The translations under genes were made by a program, and so were the position numbers. DNA of 64,000 bases, taken from positions 252,986 to 316,985 of the forward strand of contig MNCI01000268.1 of NCBI GenBank assembly GCA_015680685.1, in the 5' to 3' direction. A model generated the notes under the pieces. The model had not been told where the DNA came from and made no database searches. It saw nothing but the letters and a program-made list of their open reading frames with translations. Of this stretch, positions 15,828 to 40,739 are shown piece after piece. Each line of letters starts with the position of its first letter. Positions within the stretch are counted from its first letter, which is position 1. Source of the DNA: Gnetum montanum. Taxonomy: Eukaryota; Plantae; Gnetophyta.

Positions 15828-16786
15828 TATGACATCCCATCCCTAGATGTCATGGCAAACATCAAATATACATTTTATTAAACATTATGTGTAAAAAGAC
15901 AATACACCAAACATCATCTATATGTAACATTCGACATTGTGTAAAGGAAATAATAGAGAAAGTATAGAAAGAGAAAGAAAAGAATGCTTCATTGATTTGG
16001 AATAGAGTATCTAGATTATGCTCTGAAAGTTTTCATTTGGTTTTTCTTCCTTCGAAATCTATCCTCTTAGAGGTAGTCCAACACTGCCGTCATGATTAGG
16101 CCTATCATCAACCATCCTACTTTATTCGACACCCATGACTTGCCTTTACTAGCTTCACCACTCCATGCTTGCATGACCTCTAAGCCTGGGTATAAATGCC
16201 TTAGGTCAAACTCCAAAGGTTACCTTAAGATACATGTCCATTATTATAATTCATCCTTTCAAGTCTCAATTACAACATGTACTTTTGAGTCTTGTTATGG
16301 TAATGATAACACTTGTTATGAAAAGGCATCATCTTTGTTATGTAGCAACATTATTTGGGAATGGGGACATTACAATCTACCCCCATTAGGTTTCATTCAT
16401 CCTTGAATTAGTCCATGTTCACTCTCTTTTTCCAACTTTAATGCTTCTGTTATGAACTTCTACTCCGATAATTTAATTTCTCCTTTTGGACTTGAAGTTT
16501 TTTCTTGCTTATTCTACAAACAAAATACATGTGAGAAAATATATGAAAAATTAAATATTACTTTCTTAATACTCACCTCATTTTCTAAGATAATGAAAAG
16601 AGGGTGAATTAAAAATCTACCATTCACCAATCATCGGTCCTAACCGTGGTCACACAAAGTGCGACTCGTATATAGTTATCCAAGTGCAATTAGGATAAAT
16701 CCTTTATATCCAAATTTCATTACCTTAGATATTTTACTTATCTAATTAAAATATAAATTAAACAATAAAGAAAATAATAAGATTTA

Positions 16787-16998
16787 TCAATAAAAGTAAG
16801 AGTGAGATACGTCCTGATCTTGATCAACCTTATGAATTGATGGGAGTAATTGTAATTCTGCCATAAGTCGTAGACGATCAAATGGTCTTGTTTGAGGTGG
16901 AAGGGCTTGATCTTGGTTCTTCTCCACTTATTCTTTAGAATTAACTCTAGTAACTTGGTAACTTAAAAGAATTTAACATTGTACCAAATATAATCTAG
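16787..16998 (-). pseudogene. CCR4: CCR4-like deadenylase, C-terminal segment (piece 3 of 3)
   Basis: LDYIWYNVKFF*VTKLLELI, then a 1-bp frameshift to VEKNQDQALPPQTRPFDRLRLMAELQL...*. Corresponds to CCR4 TLDYIFY...LLELL...ALPS..SSDHIALLAEF. Confidence 0.85.
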
Positions 16999-17003
16999 GG
17001 TCT

Positions 17004-20000
17004 TGATGAGCAACTAGGTATCCCTATGCCCAACCATACGAATACGAGTGTTCATGGGAAATTCGATCGAACTCTAAGGATTAAGTGCTTATGCACTTAC
17101 ACAGAACAAGGATGGGTTATGTGATCATTGTCTTCCCAAGCTTACATGTAAGGCATAATTGTATGGTTAAGTAAACTCAAGGTATATGATTTTTATTGTT
17201 TTATGTTTTATGTTTTTGATGCTTAAAAGAGAGAAATGAAGTAATTTAATAACTAATTTGATTTAACTAATTAACTATTCCCTAACTAGTCTTAACACTA
17301 GCATCCGTTCCCACTCTCTGAACACATTCTAAACTAGTGTAACACTACTAGGATTACCAAACACTAGTCGTTACTAGGTTACCAAGTGTTCCACGTATGC
17401 TCAAAGTGGTTGTACTAAGTGTGCCAATTTGTTGATAATTAACAATTCAATAGAAATAACATTAATTGACTAATGAGAGTAGAAAATAATAGTAAATAAC
17501 ATATAAATGAAATAATTAACTATTCTGAATGTTGCAAGGTTTATCACAAAGTTCATTTTTATTTCCACACACAAGGTGTACTCAAGTACACAATGCTTGA
17601 ATAAAGATCCATTCACTTTATGAATCCTACTATGGGCACTCAGAAATAATTCTAACTCTAGAAGGAAAAAACTGCAAGAGTTCAGCTAAGGGACTAAAAA
17701 CTAATGTGAAACCAAGTACCCCTTGTCTCTTATTTATAGGCAATAAGACAGGTTCCAACATCGCATGTCTGATATCGCTTTGGCATCTCTAATATCACAT
17801 ATCCAATATCAAGGATCCAATATTGGGGGTCTGATATCATGACTCATCATACCCCCATGATTGAATGAAAACTCATCCTTGAGTTCCTTACAAAATATTG
17901 AAAAGGTATGGGATTATTGACCGAACAACAAATGACGATGACATGGAATGACAGACTCAAAGTGCTTGGTGAACAGATCAACAAACGTATTACAGCATTG
18001 GTGTTAATAACCATTATGGTGAACACTACACATAGATGATATCCAAACCCTTATTCGACAGCTTAAAGAAAGAGAGAGAGAAAAGAAAATTAGACACATT
18101 GCTACCGATGTCAAAATTGTGCACATCGTTGTTCATCCATGGCCACATGATTAAGCATGTTCCTTGCATAAATGATCTAGCTACAATCCATCCTGAGTGC
18201 TCCTTCCTATCCCAATCCATTGTTCATGTGATCACCATCTGCACACACAACATAGTCACAAATTAACAAGGATAGATAAAATATAATGTAATTGATACCT
18301 TGCCTCGATATGAAGCACATTAGTTAGGTTATGGGTATGGCAAATAATAGGTTAGAGGTTTGTAACTTAATAACTACCCAAAGTGTAGGGATGAGATAAG
18401 TAATAAAATGGAAAAATTTGCAATAGGCCCCCATGACAAAGAGTGAACCTCTGGTAGCAATAAGATGGAAAACAAAAGAACAAGGAAGATTAGAGAAATA
18501 ACAATGATGAATCCAATAAAAAGGCATAGAAGGGTAGAGAAAACAGATGTAAAAGATGGGGTGAAATGAGAAATAGTTGAGTGCAAGAAATGTTTAAGGG
18601 AAAGAGCTTAACAATTGCATCAAAAAGGAATGCAAGTGGGTCCTCCCAAAAGCAGGCTCATGCCCTTTATGCCTTGATAAACCCACAAACCAAAGAGTCC
18701 GTAGTCTCTAGGAATGACATTTGGAAGTAATAGTTAAGAAGTTACCCACAAGAATTTACCAAAGAATAACAATGCATCGATAGAGATATAGACTACTCAT
18801 AAAATCGACAATGAGGTGGAATATGGGAAGAAACATGGAAAGAGAAGAGAGAATCGAATGGGATCCCAAAATCAGGGTTGTGTAAAGTCCCTTGTGTAGT
18901 ATGTGATTAAGGTAACTTAATAAAATTCAGCCCAAATCCAGATTAAAACTAACCACATCCAGTGACCTCGCATCAACACACATGACCAACCCTTCCTCTT
19001 AAAGCACCAAGAATGCTTCCACAAAGAAACTACCATTCCAACAAGAGAAAAACTGAGAAGCAGAAAGTGAGAAAGGGCCTTAGTTAGAGGGAACCTTCAA
19101 GCATGGGTAACATGTCTTTCAACTGTTCGTTTATTACGTCTAAGGGGTGTGCTTTGAATTTCTACTAGGTTTTTTTTTAGTGAGAACCACACCATGCAAA
19201 GACTTATTTGATTTAGTCAACTTCCTAATATTGGTCAATAGCAAAATGGTGGAGACCCATTAAAAACATCCAAGTACTCAAGAAAATGGCTAGCATAAAT
19301 GCGTTGAATCCCCCTTGAAGTCACACCCTTCTTAATCCATTTGAATCTTTCCTTGGATTGAAGAATACCAAGCCACAAATTCATTAATAAGTTTTCTTAG
19401 AAAAATGGATAGTACAATTCCAAAACCAAATGAGACCATAGAGTTAAGTGGATGAACGGATGACATGGACTCATTGCCTATTTTATCAAAAGGAACCATA
19501 TCTTAGCATCACATTGAAAGTCAAAGGTAAGAACCAAGCATTAGCAATCAACACTATTATAGTACAATCCACCATCATGAGCACTTATTATATGACAAGT
19601 GAGAGTAAATCAAACAAAATGTAATAGAGAAAGAAAGAGTAAAAATTTTAACAATGGTGTAAAACAAAAACAAGTAAATATCAAAAATGTGTAAAACAAA
19701 AATGTGTAAAATAAAAAAGACAAGAGAAACTGAGGGCTTAGAATAATTAGCATGGGTGGCCATCTCCCCCATGACTGAGTTGGAAGGAGGAGATCCAAAA
19801 TAATGAGTAGGGATGTCCATCAACAGAGGTAGTGTTAGTATTGGCCATTTTGGGCTCATGGAAAGGTTTGGTCTACTGAATGTTGACTAATAATTTCTTA
19901 TCTAGACTTTCAGGTTTATAGATCATCATGGCCCCTAAAGGAAAAGTTTCATGAATGATATAAAATCTTTCCCACAGTGTTTAAAATTTAGTTCATTTTG

Positions 20001-23000
20001 GCACATGTGTAGGATTCCAATAAAGAACCCTATCACTTGGTTGGTATTTGACTTTTCTAATTCTTTAGTCATGAGTTGTTTGTTAAAGGCCTTGTCCAGT
20101 TCATTGGATGATAGGATGGATAATCGAATTTCATCTAGCAAGTTAAGGTTCATTCACCATTCCTTTTGTGCTATACTGATGTCAAGGTTAAGGTCACATG
20201 TTGTAGATAGTATATGGAGCTTAGCTTGGATAGAAAGTGTTGGAAGTTTATTGTACACTAACTCATAGGGAGAATATCCTATAGGGAGTTTCCATGTGGA
20301 GCAGTAGGCCCAAAGGGCATCATTCAGTTTGGTGCTTCAGTCTCACCTATATTTGCTAATGGTTCATATCAAAATTTTTGTAATTTCCATATTGGTGACT
20401 TTGGCTTGACCATTCACTTGAGGATAATATGGTGTAGTTAGTTTATGCTCAACTCCTAAGTGTTACATCAACTTTTGAAAAGTCACACCGATAAAGTATG
20501 TACCATTATCAGAAATAAGTGCATGAGGTACACTAAACCTATTTACGATTTGTTGTTGGAGAAATCATGCAGCAGTAGATGATGTACAGTCTGTAACAGT
20601 GGCTACTTTTTCCCACTTTGTAAAATAATCAACAGCAACAACAATGTATGATTTTCCATTAGACATTGGTGTAATAGGCCCCATAAAATTAATTCCCCAT
20701 ATGTCGAAGGGTTCTAAAGATTGAATCCATTGTTGTGGACCCTCCATTCTAGTAGTCATTCACCCATCACGTTGGCAATGCTCACAAGATTGGATAAAAT
20801 GATGGTTATCTAGAAACAACATAGGCCAATAATATCCTACAAGCAAGATTTTAATGGTTGTTCATCTCCTAGCATAATGACCCCCACAAGGGCCCTCATG
20901 AGCATCTTGGAGAACTTACAATTAATCTGCATCAAGAACACAAAATCATACCAAGCCATCAGAACACACCTTGTAAAGGTATCCGTTAATTTGCATGGAG
21001 AAACTGTTATTTCTTTTTAATGTCTAGGCCTTATGGTGTTTCTTGTATGAGAAGATAGGTAAGAATGCTACTATACCAATTTTTATCTATGGGTGATTGA
21101 TTGTTTATTACAACTACAAAGAGGAGTTCATCAGGGAAGGAATCAGAAATTGGGTATTCGTCCTCTTTGTTGTCCCATCGCAACCGAGATAAATGATCGA
21201 CAACAACATTCTCGGTGCCTTTACAATTGATCATCGTAAGATCGAACTCTTGCAAGATCATGAGCCATCGTATGATGCAAGGGCTCACCATTTGTTTATT
21301 CATAAGGAACTAAATTGCACTATGATCTATGTATACAAATATTTTATAGCCTAATACATAGTGCCTAAATTTTTCTAGTATAAACACCACATCCATTAAC
21401 ACTTTTTCTGTTGTGGTGTAGTTGAGTTTTGCATCAGCAATACTTCGACTTGCATAGTGAACGTGATAAGGAAATTTTTGGTCATCTAACTGTGTAAGTA
21501 CAACTTCTAAAGTAAAATTGGATGTGTTAGTCATTATATGGAATGTTCTGGACCAATCAGGAGCTTGTAGAATGGGTATTTCTATGAGCTTCTGCTTCAA
21601 GGTCTGGAAAGCCAGCTCACATTTCTTGGTCCATTCAAAGGATACATCCTTTTTCATTAACTCTACCAATGGTTTTGCAATCTTTGAAAATTTCTTAATG
21701 AAGCATCTATAATAGCCCATATGTCCAAGGAATGATCGTACATCTTTTATGGTTTTAGGTTGATGAGTGATTCCTTGGATGACTTTAATTTTCTCAAGAT
21801 CTACCTCCATCCCTCTTTGTGAAATTTTATGCCCTAATACAATGCCCTATTGGACCATTAAATAGTTTTTCTACCAATTGAGCCTTAGGTTGGTTTCAAC
21901 ACATCATTTTAGTACTTGCTCTAATTGATCCAATGCTTATTCAAAGTCCACTCCGTAGGTGGAGAAATCATCCATAAAAACCTCCACACCATTCCCTATT
22001 TGCTGCTGAAATATACTAAGAACCAGATGTTGAAATGTTGCTGGGGCATTGCACAAGCCAAATGGCATCTACCTATATGAAAATTTTCCCCAAGGACTTG
22101 TGAATGTAGTCTTGTCTTGGTCTTCTAGTGCTATTTTAATTTGGTTGTACCCACTGTAGCCATCCAAAAAACTATAATAGTAATGCCTTGCAATGGTATC
22201 TAAAACTTGGTCAACGAATGACAATGGAAAATGGTCTTTAAATGTTACCATGTTTAATAGTTTAAAGTCTATACATACCCTCCATTTACCTCCCTTCTTA
22301 GGCACAATGACTAATGGACTAACTCATTCACTATCAACAATGGGGTAGATGAACCTAGCTTTTAGAAGTTGTTCAATTTCTTCTTTAACTACTTGCTTAA
22401 TCTTTGGATTTAGTCATCTTTGTGGTTGTCATCGAGGCTTCATAGAGGGGTCAGTGTAAATTCTATGTTGGCATATCCTAGGATCTATTTTAGTCAATTC
22501 GGGATATGACCAAGCAAAGGCTTTTGACCATTTGTTTATCATCTTCAGTAGTTTTTCTTTTTATTGAGGAGCGTACTTAACATTAATGATTACCAATTTT
22601 CCATTCTTGAGAAATGTATACTCCATACCGATGGGTAATGATTTTAATTTGAGGGGCTCTTTCTTAAACTCGTTAGGGATTTTCAACTTCTCCTAGTTGA
22701 TATTTTCAATGTTAGGACTTGCAAGTTGGCAATGGACTTGCTCTAATGTATCTATGGTATCGATATAGGCATAAGTCAAGCTCTCAGTTGCTTTTATGCA
22801 TAAAGTTGAATTGCTCCCACGATTAGCTGTTAGCCACTGGGTGCCTTCCTGTCTTGTGGCTGCTGCATACAAGCATCTTTGTATGTTAGTTACTTGTGCA
22901 CATTGGTTGCATGAAGGCAATGTTAAGCATTGTACAAACTAGGACTTTTGCACGTAGTTACACCCTGTGTCATTGTATGTGATGCATGGAACTTTCTTCT

Positions 23001-25017
23001 TCTCAATCTTTCCAAACACATTTTCTTTTGATATTTCTAAGGAAATATCATATATGCCTAGGTGTGCATCAATCGTACTTAGCCATGCTCTTCCCATTAT
23101 GATTGCGAAGTCCCCCTTACAATTGTTAACTTGGATCACTAGGAAATCGATTGAATACAACCACCCACAAATAGTGGTGGCAATGTCCTCCACTAGTCCC
23201 AATGGAATCATGATGGACTGGTTGGCCAACTCTAAATGAATGTTACTCTTCTTTAGCGGAGGCAAGTTCCAAGCCTTATACATTTCTTGGGAGATTAATT
23301 AACACCAGAACCTAAATCCAAAAGAGCTTTATAGGGCTCATTTCCAGTGATTTTCAAATAAATAAGGGGACTTCCAAGATCAGAAAATTTCCTAGGAAGA
23401 TGGCCAACTTTAATCCAATTAGTGATGGTGTGGGTTAACATAACAGTATGAGTTAAGTGTGGTTTTTGGTTTGAAGGAAGCTCTGAAGATTCGAATGGTG
23501 GTGAGGCATTTGGAGGATTACCCACTTGTGGTTGTAAGGACTTGGTTGGACTATTGGTTTTAAAGAAAGGTTTTTTCTTTAATCGGTGGTGGAATCCTAA
23601 TGTTCACCACCCTCATTTTCATTTAGAACATACGGAACATCCTAAGACCACTTCCCCTTCACATATTTGTAATGTCTCTCCTATTGCAAATCCCTCTAGT
23701 GTTGTGCTTCCGTGGATTGATAATCTCTTGAATCTTGTTCATGCACAATGTACTCCGATTGTAAGTGCTGCATACCAATTCATGTAAGAGCACGAAGAAG
23801 CATGCCTGGGATTGAGTGATCGTGAGGTAACACTATGTTACCTTCTAAATCACGCCATTTCAGTTGTTCATATTGGTGGAGGATAAGGATAAAGTTTGGT
23901 ATATACTCATTAGGACGAACGTATACAATGCGAAACTATTGGGGCACTAGTGGATCATCATGTGCACTCTACCTCTAATTGTTCATGGTGTTGGACCTAG
24001 TCGGTGAAGCACTCTCATAAGAAGAAGAAGACATTATTGATTATTCAGTGTGCAATACTCTTTTTTGACGACTGTTAGACAAATATCCCTAAGGGTTCGT
24101 TCCAATGATGGAAAGATTTCCTAAGTTCTAATCAGTGCACAAACAAAAAAATCCCTAGAAATGGCACCAATGATGAGTGGCTAGGTACCCCTACACCCAA
24201 CCATATGAATACAAGCGTTCATGCATGATCTGGTTGAACTCCAAGGATTAAGTGCCTATGTGCTTACACAAAACAAGGATGGGTTATGCGATCATTGTCT
24301 TCCCAAGCTTACTTGTAAGGCACAATTGTATGGTTAAGTAAACTCAAGGTATGTGATTTTTATTGTTTTATGTTTTATGTTCTTGATGCTTAAAAGAGAG
24401 AAATGAAGTAATTTAATAACTAATTTGATTTAACTAATTAACTATTCCCTAACTAGTCCTAACACCAGCATCCATTCCCACTCTCCAGACACATCTTGAA
24501 CTAATGTAACACTACTGGGATTACTAAATGCTAGTCATTACTGGGTTACCAAGTGTTCCACGTATGCTCGAAATGATCATACTGAGTGTGCTAATTCATT
24601 GATAATTAACAATTCAATATAAATAAAATTAATTAACTAATGAGAGTAGCAAATAATAGTAAATAACATTTAAATGAAATAATTAAGCTATTTTGAATGT
24701 TACAAGGTTTATCACAAAGTTTGTCTTTATTTCTGGACACAAGATGTGCTCAGGTACACAATGCTTGAATAAAGATCCGTTCACTTTATAACTCCTACTG
24801 TGGGCACTCAGAAATAATTCTAACTCTAGAAGGAAAAAACTACAAGAGTTTAGCTAAGAGACTAAAAACTAATGTGAAATCAATTGCCCCCTATCTCTTA
24901 TTTATAAGCAATGAGACAGGTTCCAACATCTCATGTATGATATCATTTCGGCATCTTCGATATCGTGTATCCAATATCGAGGATTCAATATCAGGGGTCT
25001 AATATTATGACTCATTA
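17004..25017 (-). mobile_element. Athila-like Ty3/gypsy element B (8014 bp); LTRs 17004-17849 and 24171-25017; TSD GGTCT
   Basis: Similar ~846 bp LTRs with TGATGAG...CTCATCA termini. TSD ggtct at 16999-17003 and 25018-25022. Decayed tRNA-Asp PBS TGGTGCCATTTCTAGGGA (~24152-24169). PPT tcatgggggta at ~17850-17860. Confidence 0.95.
19850..24053 (-). pseudogene. pol: Degenerate gag N-terminus + PR-RT-RH-INT of element B (capsid region absent)
   Basis: ALLDLGSGVN protease, KWRVCIDF..FLDGYSGYNQI RT, KDVRSFLGHMGYY..RH and [12 protein letters not shown] integrase in the ORF track. Confidence 0.9.
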
Positions 25018-25146
25018 GGTCTCAATGAAGAATGTTGTTGATCCATCTTCATTAATCATAGTAGAGTAATTGGTAAACTATGGTTCTTTATGAGTACTAT
25101 CCATCAACATCATCTGTTCCTAAATTCTAGAATCTGAATTATCTAT
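25018..25146 (-). pseudogene. CCR4: CCR4-like deadenylase, middle segment (piece 2 of 3) between elements B and A
   Basis: 43 codons IDNSDSRI*EQMMLMDSTHKEP*FTNYSTMINEDGSTTFFIET, in frame with both neighbouring pieces once one TSD copy is removed. Corresponds to CCR4 EQQRRRLDP..EPLFTN...FIGT. Confidence 0.85.
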
Positions 25147-26053
25147 TGATGAAGTGCTAAACAGTCGATGTGTTAACTAGGCCATGTATATGGGACCCCG
25201 TATACACGGCCATATCGACGCGGCCCCGTTGATGCATCCTTCCATGAGTCGACGTGGCCCCATTTACGTGGAGCCTGTTTTAGCCTATAAATAAATGGGC
25301 TACCGCCATACTTATGTACCTTTTTGGCAGTTGTAGCGAAGCTCTTCCAATTTGTTTCCATGAGAGTTAGAATATTTACCAAGTGCCCGCAGTAGGTGTA
25401 AGAAAGGTGCTCGACTCTTTATTTGAGTGTTGATGTACCTGAGCCCATTTGCACGAAGGACAATAAAGATGAGCTTTTTAAGAATTCCTTGCAACAATTG
25501 GACTTAATCATTTAATGCATTTTATAGTTTAATATTTCTATGCTTTAATAGTTCATTAAGTCTCTATTGTTATTATTCTAATCGCTATTACTCTTTTATA
25601 GTTCGTAGAAACCATAAGTACGACCATCTCGAACGTAAACCCAACACTTGGCAACCCAGTGACGCTTAACGTCTGGTAGCCCAGTAGTGGTTAGCAAATG
25701 CTCAGGATGTGCCCAGAAGATGGGATCAGATACTTATGTTAAAAAATTTAAGATATAGATTAGAATAACTATAGATTACATAATATTTCATTCCTTACTT
25801 TCCATTCCAAGAATTAGATGCTAGAAGATAAAGTGAAAAATCCATAAAAATCAGTTGCCTTAATCTCACTTAACCATCGCAATCAGAACATCACAAGTGA
25901 GGTTGGGAAGACAACAACTGTTCTAACAAGAGGTTTTGCTGGTTAAGATCTAGTGTATGCAAAGTGCTTATAGTCTACGGAATTTGACCGAGTCGGGTAT
26001 GAACACCCATGATTTGCATGGTTTGGACGTAGGGGTATCTAGCTGCTCATCAT

Positions 26054-26071
26054 TGGCACCGTTGTCGGGGA
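26054..26071 (+). promoter_or_regulatory. Primer-binding site (tRNA-Asp type, Athila hallmark)
   Basis: TGGCACCGTTGTCGGGGA, 1 nt after the 5' LTR end. Confidence 0.9.
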
Positions 26072-26216
26072 CTATTAGTCTTACATGCGCCATTTAACCT
26101 AAGAAACATTATTATTCATGTCATTGGAAAGGACCCAGGATAGTAAGATTTACACACACTAGGCGAACTAAGTAAAAAGTAAGGTACACCAAGTAGTGGA
26201 TCATCTAATATCCAAC

Positions 26217-29200
26217 ATGTCTTCTTCTCACAGGTGAGATGTATCCAACCCACTAGTGCCACAAGAATGTCAGGTGGTCTACATGCATCTAGATGAATAT
26301 ATACCCAACTTCACCTTCATCCTACATCAGGATGAACATTTTGCGATTGGCTCTTGGAATGCTATTTCACAATCTTGCCAGACTAGGCATCCAGGACCAC
26401 AGTGTGGAGTACGTCATGGAGGACCATGACTACTAGGACTATCGTCCCACTGAGGCCCAATGGGCACGAGACTAGGATAATGCAGAACGGTATGAACACA
26501 TGAAGGGGAAACAATTTAGTAACCCCTTATTCTTTCAAGGAATGCAGGACGATGGGGAGCCTATCTTTCACAATTCCCATTTGGCCGAACTTCCTCTAGG
26601 GCATTAGATCATTCAGTCCATCATCCAGAACAAGCAATCAAGTGACTGGGATCCCCAGGAGGATGGAGGATCACGTAGGAGAGGCCACGACACAAGCAAA
26701 GATGGGTAAGAGGATCAAGGCCGTCATCAAAGTAGAGGGGGAGATCAACATACGGGTAGTGGTGATTCCTCTCCTTCTTTTCCATCCTCTTTCTCCCCTC
26801 TACCTTCACCTAGTTCATACTCTGATCATAACTGTGGTAGAAAGGAGTGAGGTGATGGTGGTCGTAAGGATCAAAAGGAACGGCGTGAGAAAGTGCATGA
26901 CCAATCGCGCGAGGCACACCTTCATGAAAGGAGAGGCAGCCAAAATCATCATAGACATCGTGGTCCATAACAGGACTATGACTTAGATGAGCCATTGTTG
27001 GCTACTCGAAGCATGCTCTGTATCACCAAGGTAGTTCAAATACCCAACAGGCACTTAAAGGATAGCCGGATCAAACGCATTGACATGAACAACATCCCCA
27101 AATTTGAAGGGGAATACAATTTTGATCCACAAACTCACCTGCAAGAATTTCATAATGCTTGCACCCTGTAGAACATTGAAAATTATTGGAAAAAGCTTAA
27201 GTTGTTCCCTCACACACTCATCAAGGAAGTAGAGATCTAGTACTAGTCTTTGGAACCAGAATCAATTAGGAGATGGAGTACAATGCTGGATATCTTCAAC
27301 GACAAGTATCAAACCTACTCCAAAGTGGAAAATCTAACACGTCAAATCCAAGGCTGGAAGTAAGGTAATCGTGAACCTTTGGATGTAGCCATGAGTAGGT
27401 ACTATTCATTGTTACATCAGTTCCCTGGCCATGGCTACTCTCAACAGGCATAGTTTTGCCATATCATTAATGGGGTCTGCTTTGAAACTAGAAAGACCCT
27501 TGGCTTATACGCCCAGGGACGATTATTAGAACTAAGGGCCCATCAACTACAGCGCCTCATTGAGTAAGTGGCTAAAGAAGAGGGGGAACTTAGAAAGAAG
27601 GAAAGTGTAAAGGAGTTTAATTGGGATCCCTCCATCAAAAAAATGGAGGTTTGATTTTGTGAAGATGAGGAGGAATCACCACTAGATGCAGCGGTGAACC
27701 GAAAAACCTTGCCCCTACAGCAATTTGCCTCTAAAATATCAACAAAGGTTGAAAAAATGTGGGACTCTTTGGATGAAAAATTCCAAAATGTTTTGAAGAT
27801 CGCAGAGGAGTCTAGAGAGCAAGGTAATGATCATGATCGGTGTAGGAAGAAGGAAGCTAAACGTGCCCACCATAAGGGTAAGGGAAAAATTGTTGTAGTA
27901 GAATAGGTTGCAGACTCTGATACAAAGGAAGATAATGAATATGACATATGCCAATATGAACATCCTAAGGGGTGTTGTCCCATGCTGTTACATCTACAAT
28001 AGTATGGGATGTATGCATTGAACCCTCGTTTGGAAAAGAGACAAATACCCCGAATGTTACCTTACCCACAAGGCAATCCCAAGCAGTTCCACCAGCAGCA
28101 AAGGTATTATCTGAGTGGAGCACCACTACAACCTTATGGACACTTTCAGCAGTGGTAGCACCCACAAGTGTGGGGGATGCCACCTCCAAGGCAATAGTTG
28201 CCTTACCGACAACCAAATCCCTATGGGTACTATGTTCAGCAACCAATCTCTCCACGGGACTCTCCTAGTCATGCAACCTTTCAGAATTACTACCACCCCC
28301 TCGAAATAATTCTAACCTCAGTCTCCATCACCCAAGGAGGAAAGCCCACATCTTTACTATCCTCCTCTACCTTCTCCTATCATCCCTACTCAGCAGTACC
28401 CCACTCAGTTAACACCTGCTCCAGCTATGCAGGGGGAAATCCCACCACATCCATAGCAACGCAACGCTACGAGGGCTGTCAACCTACAACCAGCCCCTCA
28501 GCCAGGTGGAATGGAAGCTAAGCCATGGAAACATCCCTTTTTCGGCCCAATAACTTAAGCACACCCCCACACACACCTGTGGCTAGTTCCTCTGAACCTC
28601 AAACTGCCTCCACTATTCCACCCTTTGAGCAACCTTCAAACCAAACACCCTCCAACATACAAATGGTCATGCTCATACATGTAGTGACTGACTAGATCAA
28701 GGCAAGCCATCTTCCCTGAAAATTGACTAATCCAAGGAGTCCCCTCATTTATCTTCAGGTGGCAGGAAATGAGCCATGTAAAGCCCTTCTGGATTTGGGG
28801 TCAGAAGTCAATTTGATTTCACATGACATGTACAAGAATTGGAACCTACCCTTATTAAAGAAGAGCAACATTCAGCTCGAGCTAGTAGACCAATCCATTA
28901 CTATTCCCTTGGGCTTGGTGGAGGACATTGTGACCATCTTTTGTGGGTGATCCTATTTTGCTAACTTCCTTGTCATCCATGTTGAGAATTGCAAGGGGAA
29001 CTTCCCAATCATAATGGGAAGAGCCTGGATCAGCACAGTGGATGCAAGACTAGGACTCCAAGGTCTTTCCTTTGAAATTTCAAAGGAAAATCCTTTTGGA
29101 AAGATTGAGAAGAAGCGCGTTCCATGCATCGTGTACAGTGACTCTGGGTGCAATTGTGTGCAGCAACTGTGGTCTACTAAGCGGACATCTATTCAAGCAT

Positions 29201-32200
29201 GTAGTTCATGTACTGAGAAATCTCAAGTCCAATAATGCCTGTATGCAACAACCACAACTCAAGAAGGCACCCAGTGGCTGATCGTTAATCCTGCTAGCAG
29301 CACTCTATGCATGGAACCATATGAGGAGCTTATAAGCGCCTACATAGAAAGCATGGATCGATTTAAAGAGTTTTATCAACAAGTATCCATTGTTGATGAC
29401 CATGATGATTGGGAAAAGTTGCAAATCCCTAAAAGTTTCAAAAAAGAGCCCTTGGAACTCAAATCCTTACCAGCCCACCTAGAATATGCATTTTTGCATA
29501 ATGGAAAACTAGTGATTATCAATGCCACCTTTGCTCCTAAACAAAAGAGAAAGTTTCTGAAGGTGGTGAACAAATGGGAAGCTACTTTTGCATGGTCATA
29601 TCTTGAATTAATGAGAGTGGATCCCTGAGTTTGCCAACATTGGATTTATATTGACCCCTCCATGAAGCCACGAAGATAACCATAAGTCTGATTGAACCCC
29701 AAACTGAAGCAGGTCGTCAAAGATGAAATCAAGCAGTTGCTAGAAGCAAGGTTCATCTACTCTATTGCCAATAGTGAATGGGTCAGGCCACTTGTTATTG
29801 TGGCAAAGAAGGATGGCAAATGGAGGGTCTGTATAGATTTCCAATTTCTCAACATGGCTACCTTCAAAGATCACTTCCCACTCTCATTTGTGGACCAAGT
29901 TTTGGATACCATTGTGGGGCATCATTATTATAGCTTTTTGGATGGTTATAGTGGCTATAACCAAATCCAAATTGTGCTAGAGGACCAGGCCAAGACAACC
30001 TTCACAAGTCCATGGGAGACTTTTTCATACAAAAAGATGTCTTTTGGCCTGTGTAATGCACCTGCCACTTTCCAACGCCTTGTCCTCAACATCTTCCAGC
30101 AGCAAATTGGCAATGGGGTAGAAGTCTTCATGGATGACTTCTCTACCTATGGGGCCACATTCGATCAAGCCTTGGACTGCCTTGAGCAAGTTCTGAAAAG
30201 GTGTGTGGACACTAACCTACGGCTCAACTGGCAAAAAAGCCACTTAATGGTCCAGGAGGGCATTGTGCTAGGGCACCGTATTTCACAAATAGGGATTAGC
30301 ATGGATCCTAACAAAATCAGGGTCATCCATGGAATTACCAGGCAACCAAGCACTATAAAAGATGTTTGGTCATTCTTTTCCCACATTGGTTACTACTAGC
30401 ACTTCAACAAAAATTTCTCAAAAATCGCCAAACCATTGGTGGAACTCACAAAGAAAGATGCTCCATTCGTCTGGACCAGGGAATGTGAATCGACATTCCA
30501 AATGCTTAAACAGAAACTCATAGAGACTCTAGTTCTACGGGCACCTGATTAGTCTAGACCTTACCACATCATGACAGATGCATCCAACTATGCATTGGGA
30601 GTCATGCTTACACAGTGTCATGATCAAAAACATCCATACTATATTCACTGTGCAAGCCGTAGCATTGTGTTTTTCCAGCTTAATTACACCACCACCGAAA
30701 AGGAGTTGATGGAGGTGGTGTTCACCTTGGAAAAATTTCGACACTATGTGCTCAGGTATAAGGTGTTTGTGCATACTTACCATAGTGCCATCTAGTTCCT
30801 GATGAACAAACCAACGATGAGCCCCCGTATCATACAGTGGCTAGTGATTCTACAAGAATTTGACCTCACTATGGTAGATCGGAAGGGAAACAATAATGTG
30901 GTTGCTGACCACTTGTCTCAGTTATGATGGGATGATGCAAAAGAGGAGGAGCCCCTCTCCAACCAATTCCTAGATGAACTTCTCTTTGCGAGAGCGGTTG
31001 ATTTGCAAGTGCCCAAGGAATCACCTTGGTTCAGCCACATCCTCACCTATCTAACAACTTAGGAATTTCCAAAGGAGTGGAACCATTGGCATAAATAATA
31101 GTTTCTCCATAAGGCCAAGCGCTTCATGGAAATCAATGGCCACCTTTATAAGGTGTGCGTAGATGGCCTGGTTCGATGGTGTATCCCTGATGATGATACA
31201 CTACGCGTCCTTCAAGATGCTCATGAGGGCCCTTGTGGGGGCCACTATTCTAGATGATGCACAACCATTAAGATCCTGCTTGTAGGATATTATTGGCCCA
31301 CAATTTTTAGGGACACACAATGGTTCGCCCACTCCTGTGAACAATGCTAGAGAGACAGTGGGATGATTGCATAATTGGAGGAACCTCAATAGTGGATCCA
31401 ACCACTCGAGCCCTTCGACATCTAGGGTATCAACTTCATGGGTTCCATCACACCCCTATCCAACGAGAAAGTGTATATCATCGTTGTTGTGGACTATTGC
31501 ACAAAGTGAGCAAAGGCGGCAACCATCATCGATTGTTCCTCAAACACCATCACACGATTTGTCCAACAACAAATCGTCAACATGTTTGGAGTGCCACGTG
31601 CACTCATCTCATATAATGGAACACATTTCATGGGCACCACTTTTCGTAAACTCATGCAACACTTGGGGGTTACCCATAAATTTACAACACCTTATCACCC
31701 CCAATCCAATGGGCATGCCGAAGTCACCAATTGAGAGATCACCAAAATCCTCACTCGAACCATTAGTAAATATAGGAGGGACTAGAGCACCAAACTTAAC
31801 GATGCCCTATAGGCCTATCACTCCACTTGGAAACTTCCTATAGGTTACTCTCCCTATGAGTTAGTGTAAGATAAGTTACCAAAACTCTCAATCCAGGCAG
31901 AACTCTGGACACTATCCACAGCCAGTGACTTAGGTCTTAACCTACCACTAGCACAACGAGAACGACTTATCAACCTAAGTGTGCTAGATGATAATCGATT
32001 AGTGGCCCTATCTTCAAATGAGATCCACAAGGCCTACAATAAAAAACGTCATGATCTTAGGATTCAGAAGATAACATTTTGACGTGGAGATAAAGTGCTT
32101 TACTGGAACCCCACACATGTACCACAACCGACCAAGTTTTAAGCATTGTGGGAGGGACCTTACATTGGCTCTGAAACCTTCCCATCCGGGGCCTTGCTTA

Positions 32201-32290
32201 TACACAAACCTGAGGATCACTAGAACGCAGTTGGTCAATCGGCAACAATTAAAACCTTTCCATGAACTTCACCTAACCAGTGCTACTGCC
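26217..32290 (+). pseudogene. gag-pol: Degenerate gag-pol of element A
   Basis: Gag IPKFEGEYNFDPQTHLQEF..KLFPHTL; PR ALLDLGSEVNL; RT FLDGYSGYNQI/FGLCNAPATFQR/VFMDDF; RH TDASNYALG..NYTTTEKEL; INT DAHEGPCGGHY..YYWPTIF..SCEQC. Many premature stops. Confidence 0.95.
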
Positions 32291-33929
32291 TCATCGTCAT
32301 CACGACAGCCTCGTTCCATTTTTTGTGTCTCCTCGTTTCCACCCAGTCATGGGGGAGACCGTCCTCCATGCTAATCCATCCTACCAATCTCCCCATTGTT
32401 TTTGAAATTTTTTGTTTTACACTTTTTGTTTTACAACATCATTTGTACGTTTGCCAATTCTTACTAACTTTTCCTTTCTTTAATTACTTTTCCATTTCTT
32501 CATTGATTATTTATGCATGTGTGTGTGTTTAATTTTCAATTGGTTGCTAATAAGTCATGTTATGTTCATCAGGTGTCTGGCGCGAATGGTTTTCGTCGTG
32601 ATGGATCATGTAAAGTGGTCCACCTAGTTTATCTCGCTCCTACCCTCACATTATTGTTCTTGGACTTTACGTCTATTTTCATCTCATAAAATTAGTAGTG
32701 AGTCCACGTCATCCACCCATTCACCCACTCCATGGTTTTCCTTCTTTTGGAAACATGCAACCCCTTCACTTAAAAACATTTTAATTAATGTGTGACTTGT
32801 GTAGTTTCCAGACTTGGGGATGACCGAATGGTTTGAATTAGGTGTGACTTCAAGGGGAATGCAACATTCGTCATCCTTTTCTATCCCTTGGGTTGCCGGT
32901 GTGTCCTTACAGATTTTTTACCACTCCACATTCTTCTCTACAAGGAAGCTCCTGGGCAATTTGACCTTGCATGGTGTGGTCCTCATCGCAAAAATTCAAA
33001 AAACAAAAAAAATAAAAAATAAAAAAAACATGAGAATTCAAAGCACACCCCTTGGTCGAATGCATGCAACCAAGCATGGGTCTTTGCATGGTCTGGTTCC
33101 CACAAAATAATAAGAAAAATAAAAATAAAAACCTAAGTTTGTGGGAATTCAAAGCACACCCCTTAGACCGCCTCTCACGAGTCATGAAAACTAGTTATGG
33201 GACTTACTCCATCCCCTCTAACTTAGTCCCATCACTTCCTTTCTCTCACGCCTGTTGGAGTGGTGGTTCTCTATGGGTGCATTCTCGTGTACTTGGTGGA
33301 TGGACAAGGCTTCACATGTTGCTGTGATGTCACTGTATGTGGTTGGTTTTGGGTTTGAACTTAGGAACGGTTCTACCAAGTCACTTAACCACAACTTCAC
33401 ATGGGGTTTCATGTGACCGATGCTCGGAATTTCAATTCTCTCTCTCTCTTCACTCATTTCTCTCCATAACTCACCTCACTGTCCATCTTATGTTTTGAAA
33501 GTTATTTGTGATTTCCATGAACTTCTCATGCCTTGGCAGGTTCTCATGGATGGGAATATTAACTTACGGTCACCATTTCATGGCCCTAGGGCCCACGGAC
33601 TCTGGTGTTGAGGATATGTAAGGGCTACTGAGGCTACCACCTGCTATGGGGAGGACCCACTTGCATATTCTTGGTCCTGTTTGTTAGCCTCCCATCCTTT
33701 TGATTTCATGGTTGATTATTTTCATAATACCCATCGCTCGATTTCTTCTCTGTGGAGTTCTTTTTCCCCACGTTCTCCTACATTTGACTCTTTTTCTAGC
33801 CCAGTTTACCTTCCTCGTGTCCTCAGCTGCATTCCCAGTCTCTCAAGCTCTTCAACCACTCCAATTTGGAGTTTTAAATTCATTTTTTTTATTTTTTCTA
33901 GGTTGGTCAACATTGGTCAATGGGTGCGA

Positions 33930-34030
33930 CCCCCTACGTATACAGGGCCCCATATATGCAGTCCCCTGCATATACACGACCACGTATACGGGGCCCCGTC
34001 GACACAGCCCTTACTCCGTATATATACCCG
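33930..34030 (+). promoter_or_regulatory. Putative internal promoter of extra ORF: LTR-U3-like TATACG/GGCCCC/GTCGAC repeats followed by TATATATA (34019-34026)
   Basis: Same motif vocabulary as element A U3 (25180-25275) preceding its TATA (25286). Confidence 0.55.
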
Positions 34031-34435
34031 TTGTGCCATACACTTTTCATATTTGGAAAAAAACTTGGGGGGATATTTTGCCATTTTTTTGCCTTTCTTC
34101 TTCCCATGTACCTACGTTTCCTATCGCATGTCCACATCATCCTATCCTTTTCCTCTTATGCACCTGGAGCTATGCTCTCAATTGTGGGGGGTGAGGCCTA
34201 TTAGAAATTAATTAATTGATTAAGACTTCGCACCTTTTAAGGGAAGAAACGAAAACAATAGTTTAAACTCCAACTTATCCCTTATTGTTTTTGGTTCTAA
34301 CCCATCAACTAATACTCCGGGGGATCTAACGAGATGCATGTGTCAGCATCATAACTTAGTCAAACAGAGAAGGTGTATGAGGGCCATTTTGAGCAGCTTG
34401 TGCACAATCTAATTAGTGGTTATGTTTAATTACAG

Positions 34436-37277
34436 ATGGCACAAAAACCAAGGCATCCAAGGGGAGAAGGACCATCACAACCTAGGGACAAGCATCCATG
34501 AACGGGAAGAGGATGAGGCGTGCAGCATCCAAAACATGTGGAGGGCTCTCATGCAACTGGCCCCCTCTGTGAAGTACCTGATGTGGAATCTATCCATCAA
34601 ATTCCCGAAGAGGAGATTCCCAGCGAGCAATCACAAGGGGATGAAACTCTGGGGATAGCACCACGCTTGAGGTCACCCTGACCCAAGCATGTCTTGATGC
34701 TATCAAGCCACGAGAAGTGCAACGAATGGTCCTACAAGAGTTAAACTTTGGACCATTTCTCGAGAACACACCAGACGATGTGAGGCTTCAATTACAATAC
34801 TCTCCTATGTGGCCAATCATCACAACTAGTGGTGAATGGTACTTAGGAGAGACCTATCTCTTCTGGACAAATCAGCAACTAGGGTCCAGGGAAAGAATTA
34901 AGGACATCTATGTCTCTTACTCTGCGAAAGCAATTGCGCAAGCTCTAGGGTTGCCAAAGAATAGAGCAGATGTGGTGGAGATCCCGAAGTAAGCTGACCC
35001 CAAGGTAAAAGGGGAGTGGATCAGGTGGTGCTATGGGGTGGATTGCAAATAGTTTGGCACTTTGACCACCATGGAGAGAGTATATTCAAAGATTGTGTCT
35101 TACCAACTAAACCCAATGGTGAGACCCAGTAAAATCACTGCCTTCTCCACTCGTGCATGTGCTTCCTTAAGTGGGAAATTCCCAATGAGCCTCCCACAAT
35201 TGTTATTCTTAGAAATTGAAAAGAGGTTCGCTAAAAGCGAGCGTGGAAGATGGGCTCTCCCCTTTCCCTGCCTAATCAAAAAGTTATGCAAATGGGCAGG
35301 GATGGCATGGTATGCCAATGATACACTTCAGCATGCCCCGATTGCCTCATGGAGGAAAATGATGAAGGACAGGACTCCGGCCACTACACAAACCAAGGAG
35401 GAGTAGCAACCACCTCCACTGCCTACACAAACAATGAGGTCAGGTTTGCAAACCATCGCAGAGCACATAGGCGAAATCTAACAATCACTCTTGATCCAAC
35501 AAGAGTAATCTAGAAGGACAGGTGGAGGAGAAGATCCTTCAGTCTATCGCCCTACAATGAGCCATCTGGAGTAGGTGGCTTACTTTGTAAGTCTGCTAGA
35601 AAGGGCAGGGCCGATGTTCTCTATCACCCGAATGCAGGTACCCACAAGAGCTAATCCTAGCATCTAGGAGGTAATGGTATCCACACAATAGTTATTTCCT
35701 AAAATCTTAGGAAATGCCACTACTTTCTCAGTATGCTTGGAAGATGGCGAGGGGGCGACAGTCTTGGTGATGTAGCACCAAGGACAGGAGGTTGTGGCTG
35801 AAGTGGTTGCTGACACGATTGATACGGCTCTCAACACACTGGCGGCACCTATACCAAACATACATGGACTCGAAGACATACATGCATCTTTCGGGACTTC
35901 ACATAGCAAGATCGATGCAACCCAACATGAAGAGCTTTTGGACCGACTGGTGAAAACTAGAACCATTCCCGGATGTCTTCAACCTTCCGGACAACATCAC
36001 TACAACCCAATCGGAGCTGCTCTCAGAAAGGGGTAAGAGCCTCATCTTGGAAGGGCAACTTGAACATACTCAAGCTAATTGTCAATGCTTGGCAATAGAA
36101 GTTGCTCAATTAAGAACCCAACTTTCTGATCCAGCTCTCCTCAACCATGAGCTCACTAGAGATGAAACTTTTCAATAGCTTCAGATCAAACTTCAGATAG
36201 TTGAGGATGAGCAAGAGTTGGCGATCTTTGATAAGTCCTTGGTAGATGCTCATGCATATCATTTAAAAAAGGACTTGACAGAGGTTCGTCAGGAGAACGT
36301 CAGATTGACTGCGGAGGTTCATCGCCTGCACAATGTTGGTGCTGAAAATGAACACATGAAAAGCTTTATTCACCAACAACATGAAGAGCTAGCTAGGGTG
36401 AACGCTGATGTAAGGAGGTTGGCCATTGAAAATCAAAATTTTTCCATGGAGGAGTTTTGAGCCTTGCAACAAAAATCAGCCATTGAAATCGCCGCTTGGA
36501 AGAATGAATCCCTTAAGTTTTAAAAAGTTAAGAATCATTACAAGGACCAAGTGGGATTACAAAAGGAAGTGAATGAGAAACAAATTCAAGTCACAAAGGC
36601 TAAGATGAACCAAGTGCTCCAGCAACTCCGAGAAGGAGGCGAGGTATGCAACCCATCTTTGATGGGTTGAATTCCTACAACCAGGCTAAGATCTACCTCA
36701 AGGAACTGCAGATCGAGAAATGATAGAATACATGGAGTTGGCCAACCTTCACTACGCAAATCTGGCTATGCTAACAACTGCAGTCTAAATTGGAGAAGCA
36801 AGTGGCCACCTCATATTCTTTATACAAGGGTGAGCTCCAAGCATACAAGGTAACAAAATAAAAATTAGAAACAGCAAACGCAGAACTCGAGGTTCTCCAC
36901 ACGTATTTTGATAAACAACGTGCAGTCACAGAGAACTTGGCCCATCGAATGAATGACTACCAGCAGCTGCAGACATCAATTCGAGCATTCAACATTAAAT
37001 GAAAATAGTTTGTAGCCTGGTTCATCAATTTGAAAGAACTCTTCCCTGCGCTGTCGTCCCCTTGGGAGGTTCCATTCCCGGCACACATTGGTGAAGCTGC
37101 CTGGACAGTGAATGATTCCAAAAGCAAGGAGGAAAAATGAGGGTCCTCTTGGATGCTTTCCAGTTACCTCCAAAAGTCACAGCTACTGCAAGGCAGCCAT
37201 CATTTGTGCCACTACCACCACATGGGCCGGAGGCTGGTGAAGGTCCATTAGAACCACCACCCACAGGGACGGTGTGA
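34436..37277 (+). pseudogene. Extra 3' ORF of element A: env-like/plant transposon domain plus long coiled-coil and Pro-rich tail (~950 codons, disrupted)
   Basis: ttacag|ATG MAQKPRHPRG...; Athila env-like motif ALPFPCLIKKLCKWAG; heptad-rich LKKDLTEVRQENVRLTAEVHRL...ELARVNADVRRL; ends ...GEGPLEPPPTGTV*. Homologues at 10680-11507 and 60745-62738. Confidence 0.8.
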
Positions 37278-38452
37278 TCTTCTCCAGCAACTTTTACATC
37301 TTTCAACATGGCAGAGAATCCAATATCATCAAGGTGTTCAATTTTGTCTCTAAACACCACCATTTTGTAAATTTTCCTTCTCTGTACACTCGGGCACTTG
37401 GCACTTCATGTGTGTATGTATGTCATGTGTGCCAAGTCATGTCTATTGTAATAAAAATTCCATACCTTCCAAATTGTAAAGGAACTCAAGGACGAGTTTT
37501 TACTCAGTCGTGGGGGTATGATGAAGTGCTAAACAGTTGATGCGTTAAATAGGCCATGTATACGGAACCCCATATACAAGGCTGTGTCGACGTGGCCCCA
37601 TATACGTGGCCACGTCGATGCGGCCGCATCGACACATCCTTCCATGCGTCAACGTGGCCCCGTTTACATAGAGCCTATTTCAGCCTCTAAATAAGTGGGC
37701 TCTCGCCATACTTAGGTACCTTTTGGCAGTTGTAGCAAAGCTCTTGCAGTTTGTTTCCATGAGAGTTAGAATATTTTCCAAGTGCCAATAGTAGGTGTAA
37801 GAAAGGTGTCTGACTCTTTATTCGAGCATTGATGTACCTGAGCCCATTGGCGTGAACGACAATAAAGACGAGATTTTCAAGCATTCCTTGCAACAATTGG
37901 ACTTAGTCATTTAATGCATTTAATAGTTTAATATTTCTATGTTTTAATAGTTCATTAAGTCTCTATTGTTATTATTCTAATTGCTATTTCTCTTTTATAG
38001 TTCGTAGAAACCATAAGTACGACCATCTCGAACGTAAACCCAACACTTGGCAACCCAGCGACGCTTAACATCTGGTAGCCCAGTAGTGGTTAGGGGATGC
38101 TCAGGATGTACCCGGAAGATTGGATTGGATACTTATGTTAGGAAAAGTTAAGATATAGATTAGGATAATTATAGATTACATAATATTTCATTCCTTACTT
38201 TCCATTCCAAGAATGAGATGCTACAAGATAAAGTGAAAAAGCCATAAAAATCAGTTGCCTCAATCTCACTTAACCATTGCAATTAGAACATCACAAGTGA
38301 GGTTGGGAAGACAACGACCATTCTAACAAGAGGTTTTGCTGGTTAAGGTCTAGTGTATGCAAAGTGCTTACAGTCTATCGAATTCGACCGAGTCATGTGT
38401 GAATGCCTATGATTCGCATGGTTTGGATGTAGGGGTACCTAGCGGCTCATCA

Positions 38453-39336
38453 TCTATTAAAGATTCAAAGTAAGTAGAATATGCATTGGCCAATGGAGTT
38501 GCGTATTGAATTGATGGAAACATCTTCTTCAAATCAAGTTCATCTTCCAAGGATTCCATTACACATCCATATTTTAAGAATTGATAAACACTACTTCCAA
38601 CTTTCACATTGAAGTCTCTGCAACAGACAAATGGCACTGGATCAGTATATCTAAGAAATAAATTTTTCCTCAAACTTTCCTCTATTTTCTTAATTAAGTA
38701 TGTTTCTTAACTAAGTCTAACATCTAGACATGTTGATTTGGCAATCAAATGTGTGTTGACTACACATACACATCTTCTTGATAGATGGATTTTTGGAATC
38801 ACCACCAAGGCTATGTGATTTTTTTAAAATATTGACTATTCTTTCTTTTCCATGGTTTGACATTCTAGAATTTTGAAAATTATATTTTCTAAACTCCATT
38901 CAAATCTTTGTACCAATTCAAGCTTGGCTTCTTTATAAAAGATCATACAACTATCCATGTTATGATTTCTACAATAGGCTAATCTATATGGCTCAAAAGA
39001 AGAACTTCCATAAGAACCGTTTTGCTTATAAACGCCTCTGTATCACATATTTTCCAAATTTTTTTGGAATTGGTATAGGAATTCCCATGGAAAGACTTCT
39101 TGTAGACATAAAACATTAGCATCCAAATTTTGCAACTCTACTATGATGCATGGGTATTAATATTCATGCCAATCCAAGATTAATTGTGGACATAACAAAT
39201 GTTTTTTCTCACTCACTAAGGATCTTGCAAGCACATTGTATGTTGCAACTTTAATTCTCATTCTTAGATTCTCTTCTAGATCATTTCTCTTCATGGATAT
39301 CATACACCTTATCGAAATGAAATTTTGAGTCTCCAT
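38453..39336 (-). pseudogene. CCR4: CCR4-like deadenylase (EEP superfamily), N-terminal/main segment (piece 1 of 3)
   Basis: Single frame from ATG 39336: KVATYNVLARSL..CPQLILDW..ELQNLDANVLCLQEV..YRGVYK..DSCMIFYK..KNHIALVV..VCVVNTHL..DVRLS*..PFVCCRDFN..GSSVYQFL..PLANAYS. Five in-frame stops, no frameshift. Confidence 0.92.
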
Positions 39337-39410
39337 GTTGTTTTATCATATGTTTTAATTACAAGATGAATTGATATATATTTTCTTGATCATTGAAGAC
39401 CCTTCTATTT

Positions 39411-39540
39411 CATCAACTAATTTCTCCAACTAATTTGATAATATTTAACTATATTATCTAATTTTAGTAATATTAACTAATTTTGGTAATATCTAACTAC
39501 ATTATCTAATTTTGGTAATATATAATTACATCATCTAATT
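39411..39540. repeat. Short AT-rich tandem array (ctaattttggtaatat(c/t)taacta(c/t)attat units) just upstream of the CCR4-like ATG
   Basis: 3-4 imperfect ~30 bp copies. TATATAT at ~39375-39381. Confidence 0.8.
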
Positions 39541-40739
39541 CTTAACAACCTTTTTACCCTCCTTTAAGACACTGACTTCAACAATGTAACTAATGACATG
39601 CTATAGTAATCTTAAGACTACAAGAAAAGATTAAGAATTTGATCTCAAGGCCCAAAAGGTTAAATTTGTTAGTCTCAACAAGGCATGATTAGTTATCCTT
39701 ATGTTATCGACTTCTAAGGCATAGTTTCATGATTTCATCAAATTATTGGGTATTTGAATGATAAATCTAACCTCACCATTGGTTTAGAAGGGCAAAATAT
39801 GTTGAAAATTATTGTTCATATGTTAAAAATGGATATCATATGCTCAAGTTATGTTAAAATTAAAATTTTGAGGGTCTTAAGGTACTTTCTTAGGCAAGGG
39901 ATGAAAACTAATTTTTGGGGTTTCATGGGGTATATTTGACTTCACCATTATGTCTGAAAGGTTGAAATTTGTAGGAAACGACTCTTTGTTTGCTGAAAAA
40001 GGCTTCTAAAATTAAAAGTTATGGCTTCTGGAGTCTAAAACCTTTAGTGTAAAAAAATGATTCTTAAGAGGTCATCCATCCCAGTGCTACTCCACAGTGA
40101 GTGCACTTAATTACAACATTTTTATCCTTGTTGATACCAAGATTCCTAATTCCTTTTTTTAAAAAATATTTTTTTGTATTCTTAATTTAAATCAATGGTT
40201 CAAAGATAGAAATTTTGAATATTTCATCAGTTGACAAGAATTTTAAATATTTTTGTCAATTGAAAAAAAAATTTCCATTGTGCGGTAGGGTAGGGACATT
40301 GGTAGAAATAGTTGTCTTAGTGTGCTAGCAATGGTGTCGGGGGCAAATTGGTGGCATTGGATGCAAATTGTCATCAGTCAGTGTAGACTGACATTTGAGT
40401 AGTAGCCTAGAGTAGAGAAAATTGATGTAATTTTCCATTTTCTCTCTACCACATAGCCCATGTGAGAGCTGATGTGGCTTATGTGTGCCTTGCTTGGCTT
40501 GTGTGGGGACCAATGCAGCTCATGCAGGGCTAGTGTGGCCCCCTCAAGGGCTTGCATGGCCCTAAGCAAGGCCTACGTGCTTTGCGTAGGGATCCACTTG
40601 GCTTGTGTTAGGGCCTATGTAGCCCCAAATGGGGCCTACATTGCCCACACAAAGGGCCAGTGTACCCCAAGCAAGGCTTGTAGCCTTGGCAAAAATAATG
40701 CACGTGTGTCAATGATGAGGGTTTTCTAGCACTAGAGGG

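Follow-up and report, generated by a model that had tools for sequence, protein, structure and literature searches.

Capture of host genes by long terminal repeat (LTR) retrotransposons is a familiar process, and the captured pieces are usually fragments present in few copies. Plant gene-capturing LTR elements, as treated in a 2026 review of plant gene capture and in a rice/sorghum survey, carry intronless host coding sequences between their LTRs that are amplified by retrotransposition. Large retrotransposon derivatives (LARDs) and terminal-repeat retrotransposons with a gag domain (TR-GAGs), including Dasheng, Sukkula and the elements of a sugar beet survey (PMC13570524), keep the LTRs, the primer-binding site (PBS) and the polypurine tract (PPT), lack pol, reach high copy number and are presumed to be mobilised in trans. 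Other elements have acquired enzymes: an orchid Ty3/gypsy element has an N6-methyladenosine (m6A) demethylase domain (PMC9289625), DNMT-carrying retrotransposons have been described (PMC5890265), and bdelloid retrotransposons contain extra open reading frames (ORFs; PMC5408684). Here we describe element D, an LTR retroelement in a 64,000-nt stretch of Gnetum montanum DNA (contig MNCI01000268.1, positions 252,986 to 316,985; "the window", to which coordinates refer unless the rebuilt element is named), that carries a decayed coding sequence of the CCR4 deadenylase family. Element D is one copy of a high-copy, non-autonomous LTR family present in both the source organism (organism A) and a second species (species B), and its cargo was probably carried passively.

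Element D shares features with each of these systems. Like the gene-capturing elements it has an intronless host coding sequence between LTRs, but in D the whole catalytic coding sequence is present rather than a fragment, it is the only coding content, and the copies number in the thousands. CCR4-family cargo appears in neither the 2026 review nor the rice/sorghum survey, and a full-text literature search turned up no LTR family described as having a CCR4 or endonuclease/exonuclease/phosphatase (EEP) deadenylase as cargo, which agrees with an earlier, first-pass annotation of this DNA, to which no such family was known. The LARDs and TR-GAGs are similar to D in what they retain and lack, but internally they are non-coding or contain gag alone, and D differs in holding a foreign enzyme gene. 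The closest analogues are the autonomous elements with an acquired m6A demethylase or DNA methyltransferase (PMC9289625, PMC5890265). In these, in the bdelloid elements (PMC5408684) and in D alike, a host-type enzyme that modifies nucleic acids lies inside an LTR element, with a plausible tie to the control of transposable element (TE) RNA; however, the enzyme-acquiring elements are autonomous and have an intact extra domain whose function has been shown or argued, while D is without gag and pol and its cargo is a pseudogene.

The coding sequence of element D is split by two younger insertions, elements A and B. With both excised, each together with one copy of its target-site duplication (TSD), the minus-strand pieces 39336-38453, 25141-25018 and 16998-16787 join into a frame of about 403 codons with eight stops and one late frameshift, and frame 0 is unbroken at both junctions (..ESLI to DNSD.. 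and ..FFIE to TLDYIWY..). The TSDs (GGTCT and TCTAT), the joined frame, the number of stops and the frameshift are in every detail as the first-pass annotation had described them. The ORF extends in full from its ATG to its stop codon, with further stops directly upstream of the ATG, and has no introns; its intronless character, also claimed earlier, is borne out by a single tblastn alignment that spans the whole domain across both excision junctions. All of the CCR4-family motifs previously listed were found, in order, and those in the first piece read TYNVLA, CPxxxLxW, DANVLCLQEV, DSC, NHIALVV, VNTH, DVRL, RDFN and PLANAY. In this copy the histidine of SDH and the glycine of GDFN are each replaced by R, and six of the seven catalytic-type positions are kept despite the decay. 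Following the frameshift gives a C-terminus (..LPP..FDRLRLMAELQ) that lines up with LP..SDHISLMAEFQ in an authentic CCR4 protein. The alternative in-frame C-terminus (QDHL) was rejected, as it scores 4-6 bits below the frameshifted reading and its alignment ends before that point. This copy is thus a member of the CCR4 family by descent, but is a pseudogene and encodes no working enzyme.

Local comparisons were made with the joined frame, X standing for each stop and marking the frameshift, against 119 loci containing EEP ORFs that were collected by scanning metagenome contigs with a degenerate pattern for A-D-[IV]-x-C-L-Q-E-V. The best phmmer matches among these loci (L038, L031 and L042) score 83 bits, and when the ten-residue motif used for selection (DANVLCLQEV) is masked the scores are still 56-66 bits, with E values of 1e-17 to 1e-20; shuffled and reversed queries gave no match to the same ORFs. 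A tblastn search with residues 243-580 of L038 against the rebuilt element D returned a single high-scoring segment pair (HSP) at 3832-4869 of the rebuilt element (E 6e-25, 27% identity, 371 aa), which crosses the excision junctions at 4688 and 4812. L038 itself matches CNOT6 in the PDB with an E value of 2e-53, followed by yeast Ccr4, PDE12, Angel2 and nocturnin, and thus belongs to the CCR4 family, and L042 has the layout zf-MYND-like, PDE12-like_N and EEP. Judged by these comparisons the ORF is a predicted EEP nuclease of the CCR4 family by descent, within the CNOT6/Angel/nocturnin/PDE12 branch of Pfam superfamily PF03372. It has the motifs of that family in order and aligns with its members from end to end, but has extra loop residues relative to algal-type CCR4-family proteins and lacks a leucine-rich repeat (LRR) or a zf-MYND-like/PDE12-like N-terminal domain.

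An L1/LINE endonuclease of the APE type would also place an EEP fold inside a retroelement. To our knowledge, however, L1 endonucleases lack the CPxxxLxW, NTH, EPxFTN and TLDYI motifs. We rejected this candidate, since no such endonuclease is among the matches although the PDB holds structures of this type, and Angel2 is the sole EEP match of the individual pieces. The best matches in the phmmer, tblastn and PDB searches are all of the CCR4 family, so the earlier assignment to a CCR4-type rather than an L1-type enzyme stands.

Searches with the separate stop-free pieces, which are too short for the weak Exo_endo_phos model, were less informative. The best Pfam result is Exo_endo_phos with the piece containing CLQEV (E 0.27, 11.4 bits against a gathering cut-off of 24.5), so that of the homology expected earlier the full-length similarity to real CCR4 proteins was obtained but the Pfam assignment was not. 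In phmmer searches of the PDB the top match of the CLQEV piece is a weak one to residues 86-120 of Angel2 (Angel homolog 2; E 0.069), and the piece containing GDFN has a weak match to residues 229-253 of the same protein (E 0.62) that is colinear with it; five of the seven pieces gave nothing relevant in this search. An 84-aa piece found no relative among 1.84 billion protein representatives, with one spurious repeat protein returned, and nothing in a related-locus search of metagenomes, and a 68-aa piece gave no candidate in a word-indexed search. The top three ESM Atlas results for the 84-aa piece are EEP clusters (0.84-0.87) and those for a 59-aa piece are weak, and we treat both as leads only.

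The N-terminus of the ORF is short, as the first-pass annotation had observed in contrasting it with the CCR4a/b deadenylases: the N-terminal partner-binding region of the CCR4a/b type (an LRR in opisthokonts, a zf-MYND-like/PDE12-like N domain in the green lineage) is absent, and tblastn with residues 1-240 of L038, L031 and L042 or with the LRR of L057 found no similar remnant in element D. The remodelling read into this feature does not necessarily follow, because stand-alone paralogues of the CCR4 family, about 400-450 aa long, also occur in plants.

Element D has the parts by which an LTR retrotransposon is defined structurally, namely an LTR pair, a TSD (4/5), PBS-like and PPT-like sites, and a clean empty site (Table 1). 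Its PBS-like sequence, ATTGGCATCACAAC, is similar to the corresponding TTGGCACC and TTGGTGCC sites of elements A and B. The LTRs (15828-16374 and 42584-43131) both have TG..CA ends and are 83% identical, with a Kimura two-parameter (K2P) distance of 0.203. On the plus strand, RNA reads of family members show T-runs immediately before 42737/42741, placing the poly(A) site of minus-strand family transcripts about 390 nt into the 548-bp LTR, where the R/U5 border is expected. Because the PBS-like and PPT-like sites and the RNA poly(A) site are all on the minus strand, element D is minus-oriented and the ORF, which lies in its 3' half and is separated from the PPT by about 400 bp, is in the sense direction. 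A plus orientation was rejected: neither a PBS nor a PPT is present on that side, and polyadenylation of the RNA falls on the minus strand. When all ORF segments from elsewhere in the window were used as tblastn queries, element D showed no gag or pol similarity, and the leader contains neither gag-like segments nor long ORFs; we therefore regard the element as non-autonomous. The D LTR pair differs by seven indel events in about 547 bp, none of them a multiple of three, and the ORF is free of frameshifts over its initial 1,125 nt; homopolymer runs in the LTRs may explain this contrast.

Self-comparison of the window shows three LTR pairs surrounding the ORF, those of elements A and B and the outer pair of element D. 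Element B has LTRs of 846/847 bp (88% identity, K2P 0.133) and element A LTRs of about 907 bp (89% identity, K2P 0.124), both with TG..CA ends. Element A encodes an RVT_1 domain (E 7e-22), its reverse transcriptase matching plant proteins at no more than 49-62% identity, and element B an RNase H (RT-RNase H) domain (E 1e-26), and the PBS and PPT of element B indicate its minus orientation. When 15828-43136 is removed, one blastn HSP crosses the resulting junction in comparisons with both element B and element A; the continuity of the pol alignment shows that element D inserted precisely within the pol of an older gypsy element, E. The nesting is three layers deep, with elements A and B inside D and D inside E.

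Table 1. Element D, its cargo and the elements nested with it. The PBS-like and PPT-like sites were read from the sequence and their roles are presumed.
Feature	Coordinates	Strand	Remarks
Element E (older gypsy), left half	13152-15822	minus	pol interrupted by element D
Left TSD of element D	15823-15827		GTTCC; 4/5 positions match right TSD
Element D	15828-43131	minus	~6 kb once elements A and B removed
3' LTR of element D	15828-16374	minus	547 bp, TG..CA ends
PPT-like site by 3' LTR	16375-16394	minus	purine tract ..AATGGGGGTAGAT, ending ..GGGGGTAGAT
ORF piece 3	16787-16998	minus	TLDYIWY, one stop, frameshift near 16928-16940, ALPP..FDRLRLMAEL, stop codon
Element B (Ty3/gypsy)	17004-25017	minus	TSD GGTCT at 16999-17003 and 25018-25022; splits ORF
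ORF piece 2	25018-25141	minus	EP*FTNY motif region
Element A (Ty3/gypsy)	25147-38452	plus	TSD TCTAT at 25142-25146 and 38453-38457; splits ORF
ORF piece 1	38453-39336	minus	ATG to ..YFESLI; 5 stops
Leader of element D	39337-42569	minus	non-coding, without gag or pol; 39389-40324 and 41573-42508 genome-repeated
Single-copy segment	40325-41572		GC-rich (41-51%), inside D leader, specific to this copy
PBS-like site by 5' LTR	42570-42583	minus	ATTGGCATCACAAC
5' LTR of element D	42584-43131	minus	548 bp; family transcripts polyadenylated near 42737-42741
Right TSD of element D	43132-43136		GTTCT; matches left TSD 4/5
Element E (older gypsy), right half	43137 to about 45500	minus	pol interrupted by element D

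The abundance of the family was gauged by placing contigs from DNA runs of organism A and species B on 38453-43131, with exact organism A contigs covering 40161-41712 at a depth of about 6.7 as the baseline for unique sequence. Summed contig depth, which is a rough guide only and not a copy number, is 15,000-58,000 in bins of the ORF for organism A and up to 87,000 for species B, 32,000-83,000 in bins of the LTR, and 300-24,000 in the rest of the D leader, but only 8-30 over 40325-41572, apart from one bin of 164-260. Because the contrast in depth is three to four orders of magnitude, the ORF region must be repeated thousands of times, at about the abundance of the LTR. The possibility raised earlier that this is a multi-copy family rather than a chance retropseudogene is thus upheld, with a thousands-fold depth over both ORF and LTR in two species.

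The segment of low depth is 1.25 kb long and contains decayed 45-nt tandem repeats, and lies amid the AT-rich and highly repeated sequence of element D. It has no match in a Pfam search and could be a second captured fragment or an insertion specific to this copy. Species B has the orthologous segment at about 96% identity (contig 14), and because it holds this unique sequence the insertion of element D is older than the split of organism A and species B.

Transcripts of the family are sparse relative to its abundance: RNA coverage is low for so many copies, with some of the signal being antisense and coming from a few loci or lying within unrelated transcripts. For RNA reads of organism A at 38561-38713, the match to the ORF region is limited to 40-110 nt, beyond which the reads continue into unrelated sequence with a loose-end agreement of 0.89-1.0, and it seems that other transcripts include pieces of the family here. 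Reads over 38609-38764 come, in one library, almost entirely from a single strand, antisense to the ORF.

The divergence of the LTRs (K2P 0.20) supports the earlier view that the cargo is old rather than a fresh transduplicate. Decay of an intact ORF by K = 0.10, which is half of the LTR divergence, would be expected to leave 3.2 +/- 1.7 stops, and the probability of the eight or more found is about 0.01. Given this excess the ORF may already have been damaged when element D transposed, although C-to-T hypermutation of methylated TE DNA could be another source of the additional stops. Nine of the 12 visible near-fixed private changes of this copy are non-synonymous, as predicted for neutral decay. 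The first-pass annotation proposed that selection had shaped the ORF as a transposon accessory gene; this proposal finds no direct support, in view of the eight stops against about 3.2, the mostly non-synonymous private changes, and the lack of any related protein among the 1.84 billion representatives. The five- to ten-fold over-representation of the ORF described below and the retention of six of the seven catalytic-type positions nevertheless speak in favour of some constraint on the cargo.

We consider it probable that element D is a decayed copy of a non-autonomous family in which the CCR4-family coding sequence is passive cargo. Such a family would have started with template switching in the course of reverse transcription, by which a processed host mRNA was copied into an LTR element. 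The resulting chimera would have retained its LTRs, PBS and PPT, and the proteins of an autonomous partner would have amplified it in trans with the cargo riding along. This copy would then have inserted into the pol of element E and later been hit by elements B and A, with neutral decay presumably accounting for its eight stops, frameshift, loss of the SDH histidine and change of GDFN to RDFN. The ORF of this copy is without function, and we take passive cargo as the default for the family as a whole. Several points weigh against this explanation. At >=80% identity the representation of the ORF region is 5-10x that of the internal sequence next to it, which passive carriage does not predict; and the family-wide link between LTR and ORF is inferred from depth along a single copy, with summed contig depth being only a rough measure of copy number. 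A single processed pseudogene that landed by chance in an LTR element, or the remnant of an L1-type endonuclease, would fit an intronless and decayed ORF, and L1 endonucleases do have an EEP fold; yet the thousands-fold repetition of the ORF region in two species is at odds with the former, and the CCR4-specific motifs (EPxFTN, TLDYIWY, CLQEV and NTH), the CCR4-family best matches and the similarity to Angel2 with the latter, and we regard an origin of either kind as extremely improbable.

Taken together, a functional or RNA-level role of the cargo appears unlikely, if well worth weighing. In one form the cargo would be, or have been, a working accessory gene that is intact in master copies, encoding a stand-alone deadenylase or other EEP enzyme or an inactive competitor, which might act for example by changing the decay of TE or host RNAs. 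The abundance of the ORF region, equal to that of the LTR with the flanking internal sequence 5-10x lower, fits conservation across subfamilies, and the ORF, complete with ATG and stop codon, lies in sense on polyadenylated family transcripts and keeps six of seven catalytic-type positions despite its decay. The same depth could equally result if the RNA acts in cis or if the subfamilies are modular in structure, however, and this copy has more stops than decay after insertion predicts; no intact copy was seen, no related protein was found in the 1.84 billion representatives or the word-indexed search, and RNA coverage is low for the copy number and partly antisense from few loci. We therefore consider a working accessory gene fairly unlikely. 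The thousands of cargo copies might alternatively feed small RNAs that cross-silence a host CCR4-family gene, setting TE silencing against host gene expression. High copy number, transcription of family members from both strands in places, and the cross-talk between captured fragments and parent genes described in maize (bioRxiv 10.1101/777037) are consistent with this, but a parent gene as diverged as the proteins suggest may escape small-RNA matching, and we think such silencing very unlikely. It is a doubtful proposition that active members interfere, or interfered, with the deadenylation pathway, whether by encoding a stand-alone CCR4-type enzyme or inactive competitor or by silencing a host gene. 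In sum, the first-pass annotation was right on the identity and location of the gene and understated the abundance of the element, and the selected accessory function that it proposed is hypothetical.

Several other features of the window were noted. Element A, a 13-kb gypsy element, contains a 176-aa ORF at 33681-34211 with no Pfam match. An LTR-bounded unit of about 5.8 kb at 4445-10214, with LTRs of about 1.2 kb (83% identity, K2P 0.20), is in the same age class as element D. Immediately upstream of the LTR at 4445 there are two blocks of tandem repeats, 2417-3274 and 4025-4449, whose periods are about 127/107/20 nt and 70 nt. A 159-aa minus-strand ORF at 55716-56195 has a weak match to the CREG beta-barrel domain (E 2e-4, below the cut-off), and a protein search with it gave no homologue. 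An Rfam scan of the window and of element D found no 5S and no other RNA family.

What is novel here is that a complete CCR4-family coding sequence forms the sole coding content of a pol-less LTR family that has thousands of copies and is common to related species. Arabidopsis CCR4a binds the RNA of the retrotransposon Evade and suppresses its transposition by tail shortening (PMC12501189). Because deadenylation restrains plant LTR retrotransposons in this way, the element D family is a natural place to ask whether transposons turn host RNA-decay genes against their host, be it through a protein, through competition or through small RNAs. Should the cargo be no more than a passenger, the family is still a large source of CCR4-like pseudogenes, which would mislead both the annotation of genes and the mapping of small RNAs in this genome. 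If instead interference with deadenylation were true, it would be a retrotransposon with a counter-defence gene taken from the RNA-decay machinery of its host.

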